From Octopus sinensis (lineage: Eukaryota), in contig NC_043004.1 of the NCBI RefSeq assembly GCF_006345805.1, positions 80,848,001 to 80,912,000 of the forward strand: 64,000 nucleotides of DNA, read 5' to 3'. The position numbers were made by a program, and so were the translations under genes. The notes beneath the pieces were generated by a model that was given only the letters and a program-made list of their open reading frames with translations, was not told the origin of the DNA and ran no database searches. How positions within the stretch are numbered: the stretch's first letter is position 1; every line of letters starts with the position of its first letter. Of the stretch, positions 5,608 to 63,782 are shown piece after piece.

Positions 5608-5639
5608 CATTATTATTATTATAAATATTATAAATCGGT

Positions 5640-5755
5640 GAGGTGACGAAATCGTTAGCAAGCCGGAGAGACAGACAAAATGCTTAGCGGCATTTTGTCT
5701 GTCTTAGTGTTTTGAGTTCAAACCTTGCTGATGTTGACTTTGCTTCTCATACTTT
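5640..5755 (+). mobile_element. tRNA-derived SINE family S2, 5' part, truncated where the minisatellite starts
   Basis: GAAATCGTTAGCAAGCCGG...AAATGCTTAGCGGCATTTTGTC...GAGTTCAAA...GTTGACTTTGCTTCTCAT matches the S2 heads at 24255 and 38690. Confidence 0.65.
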
Positions 5756-5756
5756 T

Positions 5757-6235
5757 GGGCTGGAAAGTTCCTAGTAGTGGGAGGAAGAGGAGGTATTACT
5801 TCCTGGAGAATTCCGAGGAGGATGGATTACTTCCTGGAAAGTTCCGAGGAAGGAGAGAAATATCTTCCTGGAGAGTTCCGTGGGGCAGGAATTACTTCCT
5901 GGAAAATTCCGAGGGGTGAGGAATTCTTTCCTGGAAAATTCCGAGGGGGATTACTTCCTGGAAAGTTCCGAGGGGGAATACTTCCTGGAAGGTTCCGAGG
6001 TGGGGGGATTACTTCCTGGAAATTTCCCAGGAGGGGAAGGAATTACTTCCAGGAAACTTCCGACGAGGGGGAATTACTTCCTGGAAAGTTACCAGGTAGG
6101 TGAGGAATTATTTCCTGGAAAGTTCCGATGAGGGGCGGAATAACTTCCTGGAAATTCCGAGGAGGGGTATTATTTCTTGGAAAGTTCCGAGAAGAGGTAG
6201 GAATTAGTTTCTGGAAAGTTCCGAGGAGGGGAGGA
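5757..6235. repeat. Minisatellite, about 14 units of 26-36 bp, consensus GGAATTACTTCCTGGAAARTTCCGAGGGG
   Basis: Units counted by eye; each unit is an imperfect palindrome centred on TTCCTGGAA. Confidence 0.95.
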
Positions 6236-6570
6236 ATGGGAGAAATGACTCAGTGATAATAATTCCTTTTGTATACCATAAAAGAAATCATTATTATTAT
6301 TATAATTATTAGAAACTAATGTTTCTTGAAGAGCTGTTTTGAGTTTCACAGTAACTAAGAGAGAAGCAGCGTGACAATGTATAAACAAAAATATTGTAAC
6401 TTTTATTGGTTACAATTTGACGAAGGTTTAGGTGATATTTTTATAATGCAGTACAACCAGTGTAGATGTTTACGTGTTGGTTTGTCTTCAGTGATTCAAA
6501 ATTGATAGGTTCGTTTTATTACGATAGTCTTAAAAGAGCAGGCAGTCACTCCTATTCTTTCTCTTCCTTT

Positions 6571-15022: not shown

Positions 15023-15788
15023 ATCTAGATTAATACAAAAACCCGCGTAAGAAACTCAATGGCAGGCTGTGTAATTTTATTATTACAGTTCACAGGATGG
15101 ATATTTTGCTACTTAACGTTTCACCTGATGAATAACATAATAATAGCCGGGAAATATTTCACTCCTTACAGAATCATTCATGATTCCTTCATAAATACCT
15201 TCATAAAATGCCTTTGGTGTTGATACAGAATCGAATATTATATCATTATATCATCGTTATGTAATTCAATCATTCTGTAATACAAATGAAATAATATGCA
15301 CTGCTTGAATTTGTGGCGCAAGACTATTAGAAACCTGAGTTTCCTGGCATCGACCTTGAGATGTACCACGTCACTCTTACAAATCACCTTCGCATACATC
15401 TCTATAGCAACATCAATACAGATTGATAGGTATTGAGATTCGATAGCTATGTGATATGCATTTTGTGAGGTGATTTTTATTGCCAAAAGGAGCACCCTTG
15501 AAGTCCACCATTAGCTGTTTCATCATATGGTTTCACATTTAGAGTTTTGCGTAATAAATCTTACGTTTATACGCGAGCACATATGTATAGGGATATCTAG
15601 GTAGATAGATGGATAGATAAATAGATAGAGAAAGAGAGAGAGGGGGTAATAAGGAAAGAGAGATATGCTAATACTAATTAGATAAAAAGACCGACAGGTT
15701 ATTAGATTGCTAGGTAAATAGACAAGTAAGACAGACAGACACATAGATATGTTTCTTTATTAGCCCCACAGGGCTGAACACAGAGGGA

Positions 15789-15868
<80 letters not shown>

Positions 15869-17559: not shown

Positions 17560-18085
17560 AACATCCAGGTCGCCACAAAAGATGCAGACAACTTCTTTTG
17601 CAGATGACATGAAAGGTCACATCTTTTTACCATTCTCAGTACTACTAAACCGATGCCACGACATCAATAGGAAATCCGGATCCACAACAACAGGTTTAAA
17701 GTAAACACAGGATGCCTACACAAGATACAGACACCCTAATATACAGACACCCTTATTTACAGACACATCTTTCTTACCATTCTCTGCGCAACTAAACCGA
17801 TGCCACGTACATCAATAGGAATTCCGGATCCACAGCGACCGATTTAAAGTAAATCCAGGGTGCCTACACAAGATACAGACACCCTTATATACAGACACAT
17901 CTTTTTACCATTCCCTGCGAAACTAAACCGATGCTACGTGGATCACTCAGAATTCTGGATCCACAAATTTAAAGTAAATCCAGCGACAGATTTAAAATAA
18001 ATCCAGGATGCCTACACAAGATGCAGACACTCTTATACACAGACACATCGTTTTGCCATTCTCTGCGCAACTAAACTAACGCTCC
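17560..18085 (+). repeat. Tandem repeat, about 3.5 units of 125-145 bp
   Basis: Repeated GACACATCTTTTTACCATTC..GCGCAACTAAACCGATGCCACG...GGATCCAC...TTTAAAGTAAATCCAGG.TGCCTACACAAGATACAGACAC. Confidence 0.9.
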
Positions 18086-23492: not shown

Positions 23493-24254
23493 TTATATAT
23501 AGCTCGCTAGCAAGATAGATAGATAGATACATAGGTAAAACTTGGAAATTGATGCGTGGCGTTCGATGCATATATATAGAGAGATAGATAGATAGATAGA
23601 TATGTGTGTGTGTGCATGTGTGTGTGTGTGTGTGTATGTGTGTGTGTGTGTTGTGTGTGGTGCCCAGCATGGCCACAACCTTTGAGCTAAAAAACATAAA
23701 GGAACAAAGGAACATCGCTAAAAATATCTCAGAAATAGCAACAAAACTTACAATTATTTTGAGGTTTTTCCTTTTTTTTTTTACATATTTTAATTTTATA
23801 GCTTTCTTTGTAAAACTAAAGAAGAAAAGGTTTATGCCCACCCTTTATTCACCCGTATTGTTAGACTAAAATAAAATCGCCAATAATATATAAAATCTAA
23901 AAAAATTTTTTTAACTAACCCTAAATTCGAGCCACTGTTTACCCTCGTCTAGATCACAGTCATATGAACCAAATAATTAATGGACGTCTCCAACCATCCC
24001 TCTGTTCAGGTTGCTACAAATAAGGATGGGACAAGAATAATGACTCCGGTGCACAGGTTATCAACCAGATAGGAAGGAGGAGGATAAAAAGGAGGGGAAG
24101 AAGAGTGACAATAGAAGCCTGTTGTTTTGTGATGTTTTGTTGAAAAGCCGCCATTTTTAGTTTCAAAACAAACCAACGACAAGAGAAACTCTGCGCAGTT
24201 GCCCGCCTCTACTTCATTGCTATTATCTACAGTAAGAAGGTGGCGAGATGCCGG

Positions 24255-24620
24255 AATCGTTAGCACGCCAGGCGAAATGCTTAGCGGTATTTCGCCCGTC
24301 GCTACGTTCTGAGCTCAAATTCCGCCATGGTTGACTTTGCATTTCATCATTTCGGGGTCGATAAATTAAGTACCAGTTACGCACTGGGGTCGATGTAATC
24401 GACTTAATCCGTTTGTCTGTCTTTGTTTGTCTTCTCTGTGTTTAGTCCCTTGTGGGTAGTAAAGAAATAGGTATTTCGTCCGTCTTCAAATTCCACCGAA
24501 GTCGATGTAGTCTTCCATCGTTTCGAAGTTGATAAAATAAGTACCAGTTGAGTACTGGGGTCGATGTAATCGGCTATCTCCCTCCCACAAATTTCAGGCC
24601 TTGTGCCTACAGTAGAAAGG

Positions 24621-24622
<2 letters not shown>
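24255..24622 (+). mobile_element. SINE family S2, nested dimer
   Basis: tRNA-like head, central GTCGACTTTGCCTTTCATCCTTTCGGGGTCGATAAA..AAGTACCAG domain (MetaSINE/Sauria-type). The second unit resumes at GGTATTTCGTC (24470) and ends with an AAAGGATT(ATT)n tail. Confidence 0.85.
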
Positions 24623-24666
<44 letters not shown>

Positions 24667-24667
<1 letters not shown>

Positions 24668-26586
24668 CATTGTCATTTACTTTTAATCTGCATGTTTGAT
24701 GCAATCACCTGCCGGGGCACACCCAGCGCCCTAGGGCAAGTGAAGGTTAAGAGTTGTTGAAATATAGCTGAAAGCTTGGGGAGGGGAAGTAGAGAAATAT
24801 CTCCATGTAATACAAACACAAACATTTACATTGATAGGGTTTTTCTAAGGATGTGGGCAGTACTTGTTAGCACAATCTTTTGGATTTCCTTGAGACATGG
24901 TTTTCCAGGGATATTGTCTAGGTGTTTCTGACATCCCTTTTTTATCATACCTAGGGCACCTACAATAACAGGAACAGTTTTTGTTTTAAGATTCCACATC
25001 CTCTGTATTTCGATTTCCAGGTCCTTATATTTACTAAGTTTGTCAAATTCCTTGACAGATACATTTTCATCAGTGGGGACGCTTACTTCTATTAGTCTGC
25101 AGGTATTTTCTTCCCTGTCTTTAACAATTATGTCTGGTCGATTAACCTTGATCGTTCTGTCAGTGTTGACTGGAAAATCCCAGAGGATGGTGACATCTTT
25201 ACCTTCAACAACTGGCTGAGGATGGTGTTCATACCAGTTAGCAGGAGTGTCGGATTTGTAGTGTTTACATATCTTCCAATGTATATACTGTCCTACCCTA
25301 TCGTGGCGATTTTTGTATTCGTTTGGTGTCAGCACAGGACATCCCGAAACGAGATGGTCTATTGTTTCGTCAAATGTGTCACAGAATCTGCATTTAGGGT
25401 CAGTACCGTTTCGGAGAACGTTAGCCTGGTAATTTCTGGTAAACAAGCTTTGATCTTGTGCTGCCATTATGAAGCCTTCAGTCTCTGCTTTCAATCCAGA
25501 ACTCTTCAGCCACTGATGGGTTGTTGCTTGGTCTACATCAGCATTTTGGCTTCGGAGAATGTATTGTCCATGCAGGGGCTTCTGGCTCCACCGCCTCTCA
25601 ATTTGATTCTGCCCATTCTTTTTTGCAGTCTGCCTGATTCGCTTTGCTTGCTTGGTAGCAGTGGTTTCTGGCTCTTCACCTGATTCAAGGTTAATGCCTA
25701 GTTCCCTTTCGAACTTATAAGCTTCCTTGACAATAGAATGCAGCTTTTTGCTGCTTTCGTGTTCACACACAAGTCGCAGCATCCAGTCTTTTGTACTAGA
25801 TAGGTACCTGTTCATTCCTACAGTAGAGGTCTTATAGCACAGCTCCAATTGCATCATTCCTCTCCCCCCCCCGCTGCTTCTAGGTAGGTACAAGCGGTCT
25901 ACATCTGCCTTAGGGTGGTGCATGCTCCTGGATGTCAGTAACTTTCTTGTCTTCCTGTCCAAGCGTTGGAGTTCCGTAAGGTTCCAGTTAATGATGTTAA
26001 AACTGTACTGGACTACTGGAAGTGCCAGGGTGTTAATGGCCTCAATGCAATTTTTGGAGTTGAGTTCAGTCTTCAGTACAAGCCTTATTCTCCTATAGTA
26101 CTCCTTTCTTATTTTTTCCTTCATAGTAGCATGATGTATACCATCTCCTTCGTTGATTCCTAGGTATTTGTAGCTTTCTTGTGGGTCAAGTTCCTTGATG
26201 GTAGTGTCAATATCTAATTTAACAGAAGCTGTTTGCCTGAGCTTGCCTCTTACAAAAGTTGCTTTAGCACACTTATCAAGGCCAGAATCCATTCCGATAT
26301 CATTGCTAAACTCTTTAACAGTTGTTAGCAGCCCTTCTAGCTCTTGGTCATTCTTGGCAAACAGCTTTAGATCGTCCATATAAAAAAGGTGGTTTATTAA
26401 CTTGTTAAAAACTTTGTACCCATATCTGGCACTATCCAATTCGTTTGAGAGTGGGATCAGTGCCATGCAAAAAAGTAATGGAGAGAGGGAGTCACCTTGA
26501 AAGATGCCTCGTTTGATGTTGATGCTGTTGGACTGGCTCATCCCATTACTATGGCTTAGAAAGAGACGTGTGTTCCACATGGTCAT
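24667..26586 (-). mobile_element. R4/Dong-like RLE non-LTR retrotransposon, 5'-truncated, in a (TAA)n tract
   Basis: Contains the ORF below plus about 160 bp of 3' UTR; (ATT)n runs on both sides. Confidence 0.92.
24826..26586 (-). CDS. C-terminal 586 aa of an RLE-type LINE ORF: RT (GIFQGDSLSPLLF, YMDDLKL), CCHC finger (CRFC...ETIDHLVSGC), restriction-like endonuclease (RHD...PD...IEVSVP...K...KY)
   Basis: Uninterrupted ORF with the diagnostic motifs; the start is a truncation point, not a natural start. Confidence 0.92.
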   Translation of the reverse strand: MTMWNTRLFLSHSNGMSQSNSINIKRGIFQGDSLSPLLFCMALIPLSNELDSARYGYKVFNKLINHLFYMDDLKLFAKNDQELEGLLTTVKEFSNDIGMDSGLDKCAKATFVRGKLRQTASVKLDIDTTIKELDPQESYKYLGINEGDGIHHATMKEKIRKEYYRRIRLVLKTELNSKNCIEAINTLALPVVQYSFNIINWNLTELQRLDRKTRKLLTSRSMHHPKADVDRLYLPRSSGGGRGMMQLELCYKTSTVGMNRYLSSTKDWMLRLVCEHESSKKLHSIVKEAYKFERELGINLESGEEPETTATKQAKRIRQTAKKNGQNQIERRWSQKPLHGQYILRSQNADVDQATTHQWLKSSGLKAETEGFIMAAQDQSLFTRNYQANVLRNGTDPKCRFCDTFDETIDHLVSGCPVLTPNEYKNRHDRVGQYIHWKICKHYKSDTPANWYEHHPQPVVEGKDVTILWDFPVNTDRTIKVNRPDIIVKDREENTCRLIEVSVPTDENVSVKEFDKLSKYKDLEIEIQRMWNLKTKTVPVIVGALGMIKKGCQKHLDNIPGKPCLKEIQKIVLTSTAHILRKTLSM

Positions 26587-26626
26587 ATTATTATTATTAT
26601 TATTATTATTGTTATTATTATTATTA

Positions 26627-26877: not shown

Positions 26878-27360
26878 CATTCATCATTGTTCGACCGTGG
26901 TCGTGACAACGGAATTTACTATGTTATGCCAGACTTCACGGTCCATCATGGCATTACGGAGGTCCTGTTCCTGGATGCCTGTATTCCTCGAGATTACATC
27001 AGGGCAGGAGAGTGTGCACCCTCTGGTATCGCGAGTAGATGGCTTCCAGAGGAGATGGGCAGAAATTACCTTGTTTTCAGCTCTACAACAATGTCCAGCA
27101 AACTGAACTCTTCTACCTTTCACAAGAGATGATACAGGTGGTAGTTTCCCATATATTTGTACTTCGGTTGGATGACGCTTCCACGAGAGATTTTGAGCTC
27201 TCATAAGGAGGCGAGTGTAAGTTCCATCAAACCACCTCTGAAGCTTCTTTGATAACGTCCAGGTTTCTGAGCCATATAGTAGAATTGGTTCGACTGTGGC
27301 TTTGAAGATTTTAAGTTTAAAATTTCTACTTAGATTTGATAACCAGATCTTATGCATATC
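26878..27360 (-). mobile_element. RTE-clade LINE 3' fragment (157-aa frame)
   Basis: MHKIW...KIFKATVEPILLYGSETWTL...RRVQFAGHC...DREVWHNIV; homologous to 63295-63782. Confidence 0.88.
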
Positions 27361-34342: not shown

Positions 34343-35609
34343 TCGTTCTGAAAAATTTGAAATTTCGAAAAAATTGTAATGTGTGTCTGTATTTATATGT
34401 AAGAGCCAACCAATTTTTTCTTATTAAATTTCGATATAATTGTAATTTAAAGGTGTTTGTAATAAGTACTGTTAAAAATACCCATTTTTGAAAACAAAGT
34501 GATGAGGAAACAAAGCCGAGTTTTGTGAATTTTCAAAAACTCCCCTCCCCAACATCAGAAAAATATTTTGACAACAAATTTCGATATAATCGGAATTTTA
34601 GCTATCTGAAGCATATTTATAAAAACAATTCATTAAAAAATATCCATTTTCTGGAAGTTGTGAGGAAACAAAGTCCATTTGGAGAGGCACAGTTTTGTAG
34701 GCATGCCAAGTATACTTCTAACATTACCCATCATAAATATATGTTGAACATCAGGCCACAAAACGGTGGTCATTGATTTGGATATTGTAGGTGAGGCTGG
34801 CAGTTACAGTGAGAACTCTGGAAAATAGCTACAGGAATGATATTGGCATCATTCCTGTGATGCTAAAGCTCACCAAATAAGAAGATAAAAGAAGAAATAC
34901 ATATAAAAAAATCACTAAAATCAGATCCAATTATCTCGATGAGATAAAGTAGTTGAAAGGAAATATATAAAGAAACTTGTTTATAAGTTTGGCAATCATC
35001 ATTTTTTGAGCAGCTGATCGTAAGTTTGTAAGAGGTACTTATCTATCTTCGATCTTCCCCACTCTCTCTCTCTTCTCCCACCTCTATCTTTTTTCTTTGT
35101 TTCTGTTATAAACCTGCTATTTAATGAGTTGGTTCTACTCCCAAGGTATTCTGTTAACATAAAGTTTTTAAGTCTAGCATCCATATCTACACAGATAAAA
35201 CGATATTTGCTTGTTTTCTCCAGCGCGGTCTCCGGTTCTAAGAAAAAAAAAATGTTGTTGAATTCTGGCGGTCAGTTTACTTGTCGTTTTATATGCACTT
35301 AAAGTACACCGAAGTACATCAAACTAACTAGAAAAATAATGTGGTGGTCCATCGATGTGCTAGAAATAGTAGTCAAATCGCCTTCAAATCATAGCCCACC
35401 CTTTTAAAAAGAAAGATATATTGAACTATATAATCCTAGAAAGACGAATGTCATAAAGAGATTGGCATGGCTGGAACGCCTTTGATCTTCATGGGCCTGC
35501 TATAACAGCTCTGCTGCAGCTGGACAACGAAAAGAACAACTGATATATAAATACCGTTAAGCTTTTTCTTTCTCTTTCTTTTTTCCAACGCTCTCACGAC
35601 TTGGTCACT

Positions 35610-36088
35610 TGGCCATTTTCAAGTCCTGAAATTTGTGGATTGGGATTAGTCGATTACATCGACCCCAGTATTCAGTAGATAGTTTTTTTTTTCTTCTATT
35701 TATTCATTCTTTTCATCGACACCCCCGAATGGCTGAAAGGCAAAGTCGACCTTGGCAGAATATGAACTCAGAACGTAAAGGCGAATGAAATACCTATTTC
35801 TTTACTACCCACAAGGGGCTAAACACAGAGAGGACAAGCAAGGACAGACAAACGGATTAAGTCGATTATATAGACCCCAGTGCGTGACTGGTACTTAATT
35901 TATCGACCCCGAAAGGATGAAAGGCAAAGTCGACCTCGGCGGAATTTGAACTCAGAACGTAGCGGCAGACGAAATACGGCTACGCATTTCGCCCGGCGTG
36001 CTAACGTTTCTGCCAGCTCGCCGATGAAATACCGACAGATATTTTGACCGGCTTGCTAACGATTCCGCCAGCTCACCACCTTCACACT
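35610..36088 (-). mobile_element. Old S2 SINE with a full-length young S2 copy inserted into its head (10-bp TSD)
   Basis: ATGAAATACC at 35785-35794 and 36024-36033 brackets the young copy. The old head lies at 36034-36088 and the old body at 35610-35784. Confidence 0.85.
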
Positions 36089-36627
36089 TGTTAAAATAAA
36101 TAACATAAGCATAGATTAGTTTAGCTGGAGGAGAGCAGAGCACATCTAGGTATATTTTGGATTGCAAATGGGTTAATAGAGTGGTTACCGGAGAGTTGGA
36201 TACGAAGATAACTGGAAGGCGAGAGAGAGAGAGAGAAAGAGCTTTGTAAAGTAATCTTCTTTAAAGTGGATACATTCATAAGTGTTTCTTGAGGAGTCTA
36301 TGAAAATAGATTCTGTTGTGAAGTGCGTTGTTGTTACTTGTTTTATCCTGTGCCATTACTTTCGGGAAATGGAAGAATATCGCTTACATGTCTTGAAGTA
36401 GTAGTGAAATATGCGAAATACATGTTTTAGAGAGAAGTCTCAGATGTAGAGAGAGAGAAAGTGTGTGTTTTATTTCCTGGAAGAAATAGATGGAGGGATT
36501 AAATAAAATGTATTTTTAACCGGGGCGCAGATATTGCTTTTGAAAGGGTTAAAAACGATCTATTAAAATGTTATCGCGAAACACAAATGGGTAAATAGAC
36601 AAAGAATGAAGCTGGTTGCTTAGAGAT

Positions 36628-37045
36628 GGCGCAGGTGTGACTATCTGGTTAATGGGCTGGCTTTGCAACCTCACCTGGTTGAGTTCAGTCCCACATTGTT
36701 GAATCTGGGGCAAATGTCTTTTATTGTTGCTCCGAGCTGACCAATGCCTTGTGAAGGAATTTGGTAGATAGAAACTGTATGCAAGGGTGAGCTGCAGAAA
36801 TGTTAGCACGCAGGGCGAAATGTTTCGTGGTATTTCGTCCGCCGTTACGTTCTGAGTTCAAATTCCGCCGAGGTCGACTTAACCTTCCATCCTTTCGGGG
36901 TCGATTAAATAAGTACCAGTTACGCACTGGAGTCGTTGTAATCGACTTAATCCTTTTGTCTGTCCTTGTTTGTCCCTTCTATGTTTAGCCCCCTGTGGGC
37001 AATAAAGAAATAAGAAACTGTATGCAAGCCTGTCGCATACATACA
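36628..37045 (+). mobile_element. Degraded S1 SINE containing an S2 SINE (36786-37012) with a 16-bp TSD
   Basis: AGAAACTGTATGCAAG at 36770-36785 and 37013-37028. Confidence 0.85.
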
Positions 37046-37149
37046 TACATACATACATACATACATACATACATACATACACACACACATACATACATAC
37101 ATACATACACACATACACACACACATACATACATACATACATACATACA

Positions 37150-44164: not shown

Positions 44165-44860
44165 ACTCCCTAACTGTAGAAGGAACATGTGGAATAGGTA
44201 GACCCAGGAAGACATGGGATGAGGTGGTGAAGCAAGCCCTTCGAAGATTCGACATCATAGAGGCAACGACAGGAGACCGGGATCTTTGGAGATATGCTGT
44301 GATTGAGAAGACTCGACAACTAAAGTAAGATCACAGCCACACATGTTCAGCGCTGTTAAGAATACTTCTGATGCGTCGGGCAATATGATATGTTTGAGAA
44401 GACCCGTTGAGTCAAGTAAAACCAATATCATACCTGGAGCCGGTTATCCCTGACTTGGCTCCTATGCCGAAGGCACGTAAAATGTGCTATCTGAACGTGG
44501 TTGATGCCAGATCCACCTGACTGGATCTTGTGCCGATGGCACGTAAAAGGCGCCATCCGAACGTGTTCATTGCCAGGCTCGCCTTACTGGCTCCGGTGCC
44601 GATGGTACGTAAAAAAACATCATCCGAACGTGGTTGATGCCAGGTCCGCCTTACTGGCTCCTGTGTCGATGGCATGTAAAAAGCACCTTTTACACTTTCG
44701 GAGTGGTTGGCGTTAGGAAGGGCATCCAGCTGTAGAAACTCCGAAAGACCAGACAGGAGCCTGATGCAGCCCCTGGCTCTCTAGACCTCCGTCAAACCGT
44801 CCAACCTATGCCAGCATGGGAAGTGGACGTTAATCGATGATGATGATGATGATGATGATG
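44165..44860 (+). mobile_element. RTE 3' fragment followed by an RTE-associated element with about 66-bp tandem hairpin units
   Basis: GRPRKTWDEVVKQAL...DRDLWRYAV; three to four units starting GCCGATGGCACGTAAAA at about 44467, 44533, 44598, 44665; GGTTGGCGTTAGGAAGGGCATCCAGCTGTAGAAAC; (GAT)n tail. Confidence 0.75.
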
Positions 44861-49418: not shown

Positions 49419-50584
49419 TACGAGTTATGAACAAAAAAGTATCGGAACTGTAACGGAGCTGAAGTACGCAGAGTAAAGCCACTTGGCACAAATTGACCTT
49501 GGATGCCCTCGCGCATGCATACTGAGTTATAACCTTCTCACTCACTTTTGTCGCTTATATCAGTGCTTGGAAGTAAAGTGTTTAGAGTATGGTCGTCTTA
49601 AAAAAGATATCGGGTTTTCAGCTGCATAGGATCTCCTTGATTGTGTCGAGAAAGAATTGAAAGTCGCTATAACAGGTGACGAATCGTGGGTCTATGGCTA
49701 AAACCCCGAAACCAAGGCAAAAATCAAATCTCACTTAAAAGGAAGAAGGTTTGAAGACATCGAATATATCCGAAGGAATGCGACGGGGCAGCTGCTCTCA
49801 GTCAAAAAAAAAAGGAGTTCCAGGAATGTTTCCTATTTTTTTATTGCCCACAAGGGGCTAAACATAAAGGGGACAAACAAAGAAAGACAAAGGGATTAAG
49901 TCGATTACATCGACCACAGTGCGTAATTGGTACTTATTTAATCGACCCCGAAAGGATGAAAGGTAAAGACGACCTCGGCGGAACTTGAACTCAGAAAGTT
50001 GCGGCAGACGAAATACCTATTTCTTTACTACCCACAAGGAGCTAAATGCAGAGAGGACAAACAAGGACAGACAAACAGATTAAGCCGATTACATCGACCC
50101 CAGTGTGTAACTGGTACTTAATTTATCGACCCCGAAAGGATGAAAGGCAAAGTCGACCTCGGCGGAATTTGAACTCAGAACGTTGCGGCAGACGAAATAC
50201 CTATTTCTTTACTACCCACAAGGAGCTAAATGCAGAGAGGACAAACAAGGACAGACAAACAGATTAAGCCGATTATATCGACCCCAGTGTGTAACTGGTA
50301 CTTAATTTATCGACCCCGAAAGGATGAAAGGCAAAGTCGACCTCGGCGGAATTTGAACTCAGAACGTAGCGGCAGACGAAATACCGCTCAGCATTTCGCC
50401 CGGCGCCTCTAACGTTTCGGCCAGCTCGCCGACTTATTTCCAGGAATGCTTCCATCACTGGAAAGGACGCTAGTGTGTTGCTTCAAAAACGGAATACTTC
50501 GAAGGAGATTAAATACCGAATAGATATGTGTAGTAGCTTTCTTATTATAGCACCAGTCACGATACTTTTAGATCAGACCGCATA
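49419..50584 (+). mobile_element. Internally deleted mariner (Tc1/mariner) transposon
   Basis: TA-bounded, diverged TIRs (TACGAGTTATGAACAAAAAAGTATCGGAACTG vs reverse complement TATGCGGTCTGATCTAAAAGTATCGTGACTG); transposase remnants ITGDESWVYG*NPETK and LKGRRFEDIE...EFQECF...YFEGD*. Confidence 0.8.
49834..50437 (-). mobile_element. S2 SINE trimer (184-bp period) inserted in the mariner
   Basis: TSD TTCCAGGAATG(T/C)TTCC at 49818-49833 and 50438-50453; AAATACC junctions at 50011, 50195, 50379. Confidence 0.9.
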
Positions 50585-63294: not shown

Positions 63295-63782
63295 ATGCAT
63301 AAGATCTGGTCATCAAATCTAAGTAGAGACTTCAAACTTGAAATCTTCAAAGCCACAGTCGAACCAATTCTATTATATGGCTCAGAAACCTGGACGCTAT
63401 CAAAGAAGCTTGAGAGGCGGTTGGATGGAACCTACACTCGCCTCCTTATGAGAGCTCAAAATCTCTCGTGGAAGCACCATCCAACTAAAATGCAAATATA
63501 TGGGAAACTACCACCTGTGTCATCTCTTGTGAAAGGTAGGAGAGTCCAGTTTGCTGGACATTGTTGCAGAGCTGAAAAAGAAGTAACTTCTACTCTTCTC
63601 CTCTGGAAGCCATCTACTCGCAATACCAGAGGGCGCACACTCTCCTACCCTGATGTAATCTCCAGGGATACAAGCATCCAGCAACAGGACCTCCGTAATG
63701 CCATGATGGACCGTGAAGTCTGGCGTAGCATGGTAAATTCCATTGTCTCGACCACGGTCGAACAATGATGATGATGATGATG
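63295..63782 (+). mobile_element. RTE-clade LINE 3' fragment (157-aa frame, (TGA)n tail)
   Basis: Homologous to 26878-27360; possible TAAT TSD at 63293-63296 and 63783-63786. Confidence 0.88.

Follow-up and report, generated by a model that had tools for sequence, protein, structure and literature searches.

Can a short interspersed nuclear element (SINE) take one fixed nucleotide of its own family as its insertion site? The question is raised by a stretch of 64,000 nucleotides (nt) from Octopus sinensis (contig NC_043004.1, positions 80,848,001 to 80,912,000 of the forward strand; hereafter the window), in which copies of a young SINE subfamily, marked by the motif GGGTAGT in their tails, end directly against an internal position of another member of the same family. 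We assign a probability of about 0.55 to the reading that this subfamily has repeatedly retrotransposed into its own family, in the same orientation and at the bond between consensus positions 46 and 47 (...RKC/GGTATTTC, with the slash marking the bond). All copy counts given below refer to this one 64-kb octopus window and its three junction loci; with three loci, self-homing that builds tandem arrays is a well-founded lead and not a proven rule.

The tail-to-G47 junction and its hosts

The SINE family has a unit of about 229 base pairs (bp) and is represented by 12 members or fragments, as found with BLAST and an nhmmer profile. Its members are short, non-coding, dispersed and flanked by target-site duplications (TSDs), as SINEs are, and they lack a long open frame; the TSDs are 16 bp long and perfect or near-perfect at loci D and C, and 10 bp long at locus A. 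There are two young subfamilies, the tails of which have the form GTGGG(TAGT/CAAT)AAAGAAATA and lie two transitions apart: the GGGTAGT subfamily (tail GTGGGTAGTAAAGAAATA), comprising the young unit of locus A, unit B1 of locus B and units C1 and C2 of locus C, and the GGGCAAT subfamily (tail GTGGGCAATAAAGAAATA), comprising unit C3 and copy D. Because their bodies also differ in several places (GATAAATTAAG in GGGTAGT units versus GATTAAATAAG in GGGCAAT units, and CTCTCTGYR versus CCYTTYTAT), these are real lineages and not tail variants. A different 3′ half, ending in ...CCCACAAATTTCAGGCCTTGTGCC... followed by a trinucleotide repeat, characterizes the old-type copies E, F, G, H and I as well as the two hosts at loci A and B.

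All four GGGTAGT tails run into GGTATTTC, which corresponds to position 47 of a second family member lying in the same orientation, and the tail GGGTAGTAAAGAAATA is common to the four units that precede GGTATTTC. The 17-mer AAAGAAATAGGTATTTC occurs exactly four times in the window, whereas about 0.4 occurrences would be expected by chance even with up to three mismatches:

24461-24477, plus strand, locus B
35787-35803, minus strand, locus A
50010-50026, minus strand, locus C
50194-50210, minus strand, locus C

The junctions that the initial annotation had placed at 24470, 50011 and 50195, in addition to the one at locus A, are thereby recovered. Insertion at the same nucleotide of a repeated target, in the same orientation, is seen at three loci and in three different hosts. 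C1 and C2 share 98.9% identity, so that no more than three or four events, in these three loci, stand behind the four junctions.

By contrast, the tail search placed three of three other tails away from the junction, each adjoining unrelated DNA: two of the GGGCAAT type (36994-37012 and 49834-49852) and one truncated and diverged (15750-15768). The claim that every GGGTAGT tail in the window sits at the site and that the GGGCAAT copies landed elsewhere therefore agrees with the tail search (4 of 4 versus 0 of 3 units at the junction; Fisher p = 0.029). The copies used for comparison are as follows:

36786-37012, plus strand: locus D, a solitary GGGCAAT copy in unrelated DNA
36770-36785 and 37013-37028: TSDs of locus D, AGAAACTGTATGCAAG, 16 bp, perfect
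15750-15793, minus strand: 5′-truncated, diverged tail fragment (...GGGGCTAATAAAGAAACA), off the junction

Locus A records a primary nested retrotransposition, complete with TSD, and is composed of the following parts:

36080-35620, minus strand: locus A overall
36034-36080, minus strand: head of the old-type host, positions 1-46, ending ...TCTGTC, with old-type markers GGAATCGTTAGCAAGCC in common with copy E
36024-36033, minus strand: upstream TSD copy GGTATTTCAT, host positions 47-56, a 10/10 match to the downstream copy
35795-36023, minus strand: insert, a full-length 229-bp GGGTAGT copy that begins CGGCGAGCTGG, has a head of its own and ends GTGGGTAGTAAAGAAATA
35785-35794, minus strand: downstream TSD copy GGTATTTCAT
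35620-35784, minus strand: rest of the old-type host body, from position 57 to the tail ...CCACAAATTTCAGGACTTG

On the SINE consensus, the old head ends at position 56 and the old body resumes at position 47, and this overlap of host positions 47-56 identifies the 10-mer as a genuine target duplication. A private CAT, in place of the CGT of the consensus and of every other copy, is found in both 10-mers, and once the insert is taken out the flanks rejoin without a gap into an old-type SINE that is collinear with copies E, F and G. The old head, the young copy and the 10-bp TSD (35785-35794 and 36024-36033) described in the initial annotation are thus borne out. The two adjacent heads were scored by TRF as a 55-bp near-repeat. 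Some 60 nt beyond the tail of the host, on its downstream side, AAAAAGCTTAACGGTATTT (35545-35563, minus strand) matches 16 of 19 bases of SINE positions ~35-53; the 19-nt local alignment is no better than those of shuffled sequences, and the match could be due to chance or could be a relic of another copy.

The hosts of the three loci differ from one another. An alignment of the A and B old bodies gives 71% identity, with 61 gap columns and different large indels; each of them resembles the unoccupied copy G at least as closely (72% and 79%), whereas the young inserted parts of A and B are 91% identical. At locus C, the downstream partner is of the GGGCAAT type, a subfamily other than that of the old-type hosts of A and B. 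Around the junction, the loci diverge within 8-10 nt on either side. Because their downstream partners differ, the junctions do not derive from the amplification of a single composite; identical old-body mutations at all loci, which had been named as the mark of a single master copy, are not what these bodies contain.

Putative in-register joins at loci B and C

Locus B has the same junction in a compound with a single head:

24240-24620, plus strand: locus B overall, with one head, young-type body, GGGTAGT tail, GGTATTTCGTCCGTC and old-type body
24240-24285, plus strand: compound head, positions 1-46, with old-type or intermediate markers GGTGG... and CGGAATCG
24286-24300, plus strand: putative upstream copy of a 15-bp duplication, GGTATTTCGCCCGTC, positions 47-61, with old-type T60
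24301-24469, plus strand: putative insert-derived part, a GGGTAGT copy from about position 62 to 229 joined in register, with young-type C63, GATAAATTAAG and the GGGTAGT tail
24470-24484, plus strand: downstream duplication copy GGTATTTCGTCCGTC, directly 3′ of the tail
24485-24620, plus strand: remaining old-type host body, with a 13-bp deletion, and tail ...CCCACAAATTTCAGGCCTTGTGCC..., then (ATT)n

Locus C is a tandem array (50431-49834, minus strand) with a period of 184 and 93% matches, in which the array building proposed in the initial annotation is directly visible. One 16-bp repeat pair, GGAA(G/A)CATTCCTGGAA, encloses the whole array:

50438-50453, minus strand: upstream TSD GGAAGCATTCCTGGAA, then six extra bases, ATAAGT
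50202-50431, minus strand: unit C1, full, with head and GGGTAGT tail
50018-50201, minus strand: unit C2, headless (47-229), GGGTAGT tail, 98.9% identical to C1, with private A64 as in C3
49834-50017, minus strand: unit C3, headless (47-229), GGGCAAT subfamily, presumably the original host body
49818-49833, minus strand: downstream TSD GGAAACATTCCTGGAA, 15/16 to the upstream copy

The clean TSD of the initial annotation therefore stands at locus A and does not extend to loci B and C, where the joins are headless and in register. Evidence for these joins comes from the 34 bases after position 47, aligned in every unit. The upstream unit of B reads GGTATTTCGCCCGTC followed by GCTACG, with T60 as in the downstream host and the old copies E and F; T60 is absent from all five other young-type units, and the B unit turns young-type at C63. 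At locus C, units C2 and C3 have a private A64 (GCAACG) that is absent from C1 and from all other units, and beyond about position 66 unit C2 is C1-like throughout. From these bases we infer in-register joins: they suggest that the upstream units at B and C hold duplicated target sequence from the host, about 15 bp at B and about 18 bp at C. On the simplest reading, which for B and C is suggestive only, the duplication would start at G47 in every case and cover positions 47-56 at A, 47-61 at B and 47-64 at C. Head-versus-body divergence, compared for the origin of the C1 head, is higher for the heads in every pair and so says nothing about that origin.

Positions 62-74 (GCTACGTTCTGAG-like) are gone from the locus B host at 24485, the deletion beginning exactly at the end of the duplication; this 13-bp loss could be a coincidence or could be associated with insertion. 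A 14-nt candidate TSD around locus B (CTACAGTA...) was rejected, because its downstream copy is the old-type tail that is common to copies G and I.

Both kinds of join could arise from one pathway, target-primed reverse transcription. The bottom strand would be nicked at 46/47, its 3′ end priming complementary DNA (cDNA) synthesis on the SINE RNA, and the top strand would be cut at a variable distance 10-18 nt downstream (position 56, 61 or ~64), such that the duplication would always run from G47. Because insert and target are relatives, the top-strand overhang could usually anneal in register to the growing cDNA and prime the second strand; the insert head would then be lost as a flap, leaving a headless tandem array with a period of 184, as at B and C. 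Where annealing fails, the cDNA would run to its end and a complete second head would be kept, as at locus A, where the full head may have survived because the overhang is only 10 nt long and has two mismatches to the insert.

Choice of the site and rival explanations

The octamer GGTATTTC occurs eight times in the window, each time within this SINE family (about 2.3 occurrences would be expected by chance), so that eight bases of recognition would be enough to look like 'self-homing'. Three of the pre-insertion GGTATTTC sites are filled and one, in copy D, is empty. Among the old-type copies, the three with GGCATTT at the site are all empty, whereas GGTATTT stands in both of the filled hosts (Fisher p = 0.10). 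The 16-bp TSDs of the solitary GGGCAAT copies begin with AGAAAC and GGAAAC (RGAAAC), similar to the AGAAAT in which the tail of these copies ends. There are hints in such sequences that primer-template pairing may guide target choice in this SINE system, as has been put forward for RTE-related SINEs (PMC6007223).

Several other candidate signals were considered. The junction forms a near-palindrome, GAAATA-GG-TATTTC (24464-24477, 35787-35800, 50010-50023 and 50194-50207), in which reverse-complementing the last six tail bases, GAAATA, gives exactly target bases 49-54; it leaves the subfamily contrast unexplained because the GGGCAAT tail ends in the same six bases. Direct pairing of tail and primer does not fit, as GAAATA complements the top strand of the target and would give the opposite orientation. 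Nicking directed by a hairpin or cruciform was rejected, since the consensus target folds only weakly (z = -0.7) and host A has almost no fold (-1.1 kcal/mol). Cleavage as in transfer RNA (tRNA) halves or introns was also set aside, since no tRNA fold is detectable and position 47 would lie in a stem and not in an anticodon loop. ARAGORN found no tRNA in the window, and Rfam found none in 35500-37100 at E ≤ 1; by eye, the SINE head has an A-box-like TTAGCACGCCGGG at ~19-31 and a B-box-like GAGTTCAAATTCC at ~69-81, and these motifs are the sole basis on which it might be called tRNA-derived.

As to the cause of the specificity, we infer only a tentative preference. Transcripts of nested source copies may carry target bases (GGUAUUU...) beyond their tail and pair with the nicked target, such that the address is inherited; the 3′ end of such an RNA would read ...AAAUAGGUAUUU. 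In R2, downstream target sequence on the RNA reportedly helps to choose the primer (Luan and Eickbush). Because the two tails are only two transitions apart, a switch of partner long interspersed nuclear element (LINE) between the subfamilies seems unlikely, which is why we prefer pairing by carried-over RNA; a partner LINE with a sequence-specific endonuclease is, as a cause, an unlikely alternative on present evidence. The combined proposal, in which a SINE lineage is site-specific for its own family through an inherited RNA address, uses no dedicated endonuclease and builds headless in-register arrays, is best regarded as doubtful.

Several points weigh against repeated self-insertion at position 47. 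The junction loci are few, three in a single window, and when the subfamily contrast is counted by loci (3 versus 3) it is weak (p = 0.10), so a specificity of the GGGTAGT subfamily for the site is not established. Copy D has its own intact GGTATTTC site (36829), which is unoccupied. Loci B and C have neither a second head nor an independent TSD, and their in-register TSDs have one diagnostic base each. Given its single 16-bp TSD pair, array C could have been retrotransposed as one unit, and its second junction may be due either to unequal crossing-over at a later time or to another hit at the site. The window has four LINE 3′ ends, none of which resembles ...TGTGGGCAATAAAGAAATA, so that the match between tail and LINE 3′ end sought by the initial annotation did not materialize there; the partner may be located in another part of the genome. 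Nor does any LINE in the window lie at position 46/47 of a SINE copy. As the tail itself is not complementary to the primer strand, the pairing model depends on an RNA that reads through to a 3′ end shortly beyond the tail, and termination by RNA polymerase III at TTT is not canonical. Of the self-homing first proposed, then, the same junction at three loci in different hosts stands, whereas subfamily specificity (p = 0.029-0.10) does not yet stand with it and loci B and C need the in-register assumption.

Other processes could place a tail against G47. In one, a single ancient nested insertion founded the junction, and compounds of a GGGTAGT unit and the 3′ part of a host with a working tail were then retrotransposed as units or spread by ectopic recombination or gene conversion among SINE copies, with the GGGTAGT tail never having been a functional 3′ end; GGGTAGT does turn the tail AATAAA into AGTAAA. 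The single 16-bp TSD pair around the three C units and the lack of a second head in B would fit such a founder, and co-conversion from a donor could explain why both occupied old-type hosts have GGTATTT and the unoccupied ones GGCATTT. We nevertheless regard it as unlikely: the three downstream partners differ, the old bodies of A and B share 71% identity and differ in their indels, compared with 91% identity for their inserts, C3 belongs to another subfamily, and locus A has the split host head and TSD of a primary insertion. Moreover, divergence within 8-10 nt of the junction leaves almost no shared flank for conversion. Unequal homologous crossing-over was rejected as the source of the junctions, because joining the tail to position 47 brings together non-homologous positions and, at A and B, different subfamilies; it can only have expanded C1-C3 to C1-C2-C3.

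Chimeric retrotranscripts would form if a LINE reverse transcriptase started on a SINE RNA with a competent tail, met a 5′ end or strong stop at position 47 and jumped to the 3′ end of an abundant GGGTAGT RNA. This would account for GGGTAGT tails that are always internal, for the single TSD pair around C and for the absence of a second head in B and C, but the order at locus A (host 1-56, insert 1-229, host 47 to end, with a 10-bp duplicate) would need two further precise jumps. T60 and A64 are common to upstream and downstream units, which would not be expected from a jump to an unrelated RNA; the breakpoint, always at 47, is fixed, unlike in known chimeras; and position 47 lacks a stable hairpin or tRNA-like fold (host A, -1.1 kcal/mol; no tRNA by ARAGORN or Rfam). 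Taken together, these points make template jumping quite improbable. A plain endonuclease hotspot, that is, a LINE-preferred motif at 46/47 of an abundant SINE that any subfamily would use, would reduce the subfamily contrast to sampling noise. Such noise is compatible with p = 0.10 by loci, and the two transitions between the tails make a change of partner LINE unlikely; furthermore, all GGTATTTC octamers in the window belong to the family. However, the GGGCAAT targets (GAT/AGAAAC and GAT/GGAAGC, with the slash again marking the bond) are unlike RKC/GGTATTTC, and the contrast of 4/4 to 0/3 lies in the direction already stated, which leaves a hotspot that is blind to subfamily rather unlikely in our judgement.

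Related systems and neighbouring elements

Sequence-specific retrotransposition without long terminal repeats (non-LTR), carried out by a SINE and aimed at its own family, is partly supported as a description of this behaviour. As in R2 (28S ribosomal DNA), Dong/R4 ((TAA)n), the Tx1 group, Utopia (U2) and R2 SIDEs, one fixed nucleotide of a multicopy target is used in a fixed orientation, the targets of the Tx1 group being small nuclear RNA, tRNA or 5S genes or microsatellites (PMC4640811, PMC3414825). A precise first nick followed by a less precise second nick, which would apply here too, is likewise a trait of sequence-specific non-LTR elements. Unlike in those elements, the mobile unit is a SINE, the target is its own family and not a host gene or microsatellite, and a sister subfamily with a near-identical tail inserts elsewhere. 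No LINE with a position-47 target is present in the window, and we know of none that targets position 47 of this SINE.

In Drosophila HeT-A/TART and Chlorella Zepp, a new copy lands on an earlier one and arrays form by retrotransposition (reviewed in PMC4700185). The resemblance lies in arrays that grow on previous copies and not by recombination; the difference is that those elements join whole at ends or poly(A) tails, whereas the site here is internal, the join is in register and the units are headless. SINEs inside SINEs are common and are used for dating subfamilies (TinT, Alu-in-Alu; PMC3014933), and dimeric SINEs exist (PMC4758252). Alu-in-Alu hotspots follow the A-rich L1 cleavage motif at several positions, in contrast to the single non-A-rich position found here. 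In the open-access full-text literature we found no description of a single fixed, non-A-rich SINE-in-SINE position used by one subfamily, nor, in the full text of the open-access subset, of self-homing by octopus SINEs. For squamate SINE-derived satellites, unequal recombination or 'insertion into the same locus' has been named as the first step (PMC10702118). There, as here, tandem repeats come from portions of a SINE; unlike there, the first step is directly visible in the octopus window and recurs at one nucleotide, and the arrays are short (2-3 units). Locus C also resembles U6-L1 chimeras in having a full-length 5′ partner and a 5′-truncated 3′ partner within one TSD pair, but differs from them in the constant breakpoint, in the private bases common to its units and, at locus A, in the split host with a TSD.

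SINEs make up ~4-12% of octopus genomes (PMC12988792, PMC13282606) and have been linked to genome reshuffling in them. If repeated insertion at position 47 is real, this SINE would be a rare non-autonomous element with a fixed target and could show how specificity can come from RNA-target pairing alone. It would also trace directly, step by step, how a dispersed SINE turns into tandem repeats, a transition that is the missing first step of SINE-derived satellites. Nested and in-register copies would distort subfamily consensus sequences, age estimates and copy counts, and may help to explain the hundreds of 'unclassified SINE' families that automated pipelines report in Octopus; and the idea of a 'safe harbour' could be put to the test by setting nested copies against solitary ones in the vicinity of genes.

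Four LINEs were recognized in the window: a Dong/R4-like element between (TAA)n repeats, two RTE fragments and an element of the AP-endonuclease type. The sole site-specific LINE among them targets (TAA)n; the statement that LINEs with a restriction-like endonuclease are abundant here does not hold up. Active Dong-R4, Tx1-type, R2 and Hero lineages have been described in octopus genomes (PMC13282606). The Dong/R4-like element (24621-26625, minus strand) is 5′-truncated, has (TAA)n on both sides (24621-24668 and ~26590-26625) and contains an open reading frame (ORF) of 586 amino acids (aa) at 24826-26586, with the C-terminal reverse transcriptase part, a zinc-finger-like motif and, by eye only, a restriction-like endonuclease motif. 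This microsatellite-specific insertion apparently landed in the (ATT)n that forms the tail of the old SINE at locus B. Two RTE-like C-terminal ORFs of 157 aa lie at 26884-27357 (minus strand) and 63295-63768 (plus strand), and both elements end at the stop codon and run directly into (GTA)n and (TGA)n, respectively.

Very short ENA metagenome contigs, probably octopus host contamination, carry the closest database relatives of the RTE-like ORFs (92% identity). Long ENA contigs with relatives of the window RTE ORF (L137-L141) hold no copy of the SINE and, for that reason, are ascribed to other organisms; the remaining contigs with such relatives are LINE-only and shorter than 3 kb. An 18-nt tail pattern gave only chance matches to viral and bacterial or archaeal contigs, and two conserved SINE-core patterns gave none (0) in JGI metagenomes. 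The antisense peptide of the SINE has one UniRef match, from Octopus bimaculoides, with a GGGCAAT-type tail and an unrelated flank, in agreement with the genus; a full HMMER scan with the junction peptide returned the same entry and a spurious bacterial repeat protein.

An assembly gap of 100 N (2280-2379) lies within microsatellite-rich DNA. The old-type SINE copy E (5637-5764) ends where a tandem repeat begins (5787-6237; period 65/96, ~5-7 copies, unit ...ACTTCCTGGAAAGTTCCGAGGAGG...), the motif TTCCTGGAA of which is found also in the TSD of array C. Two further tandem repeats lie at 17618-17898 (period 148, 1.9 copies) and 44449-44684 (period 66, 3.5 copies).
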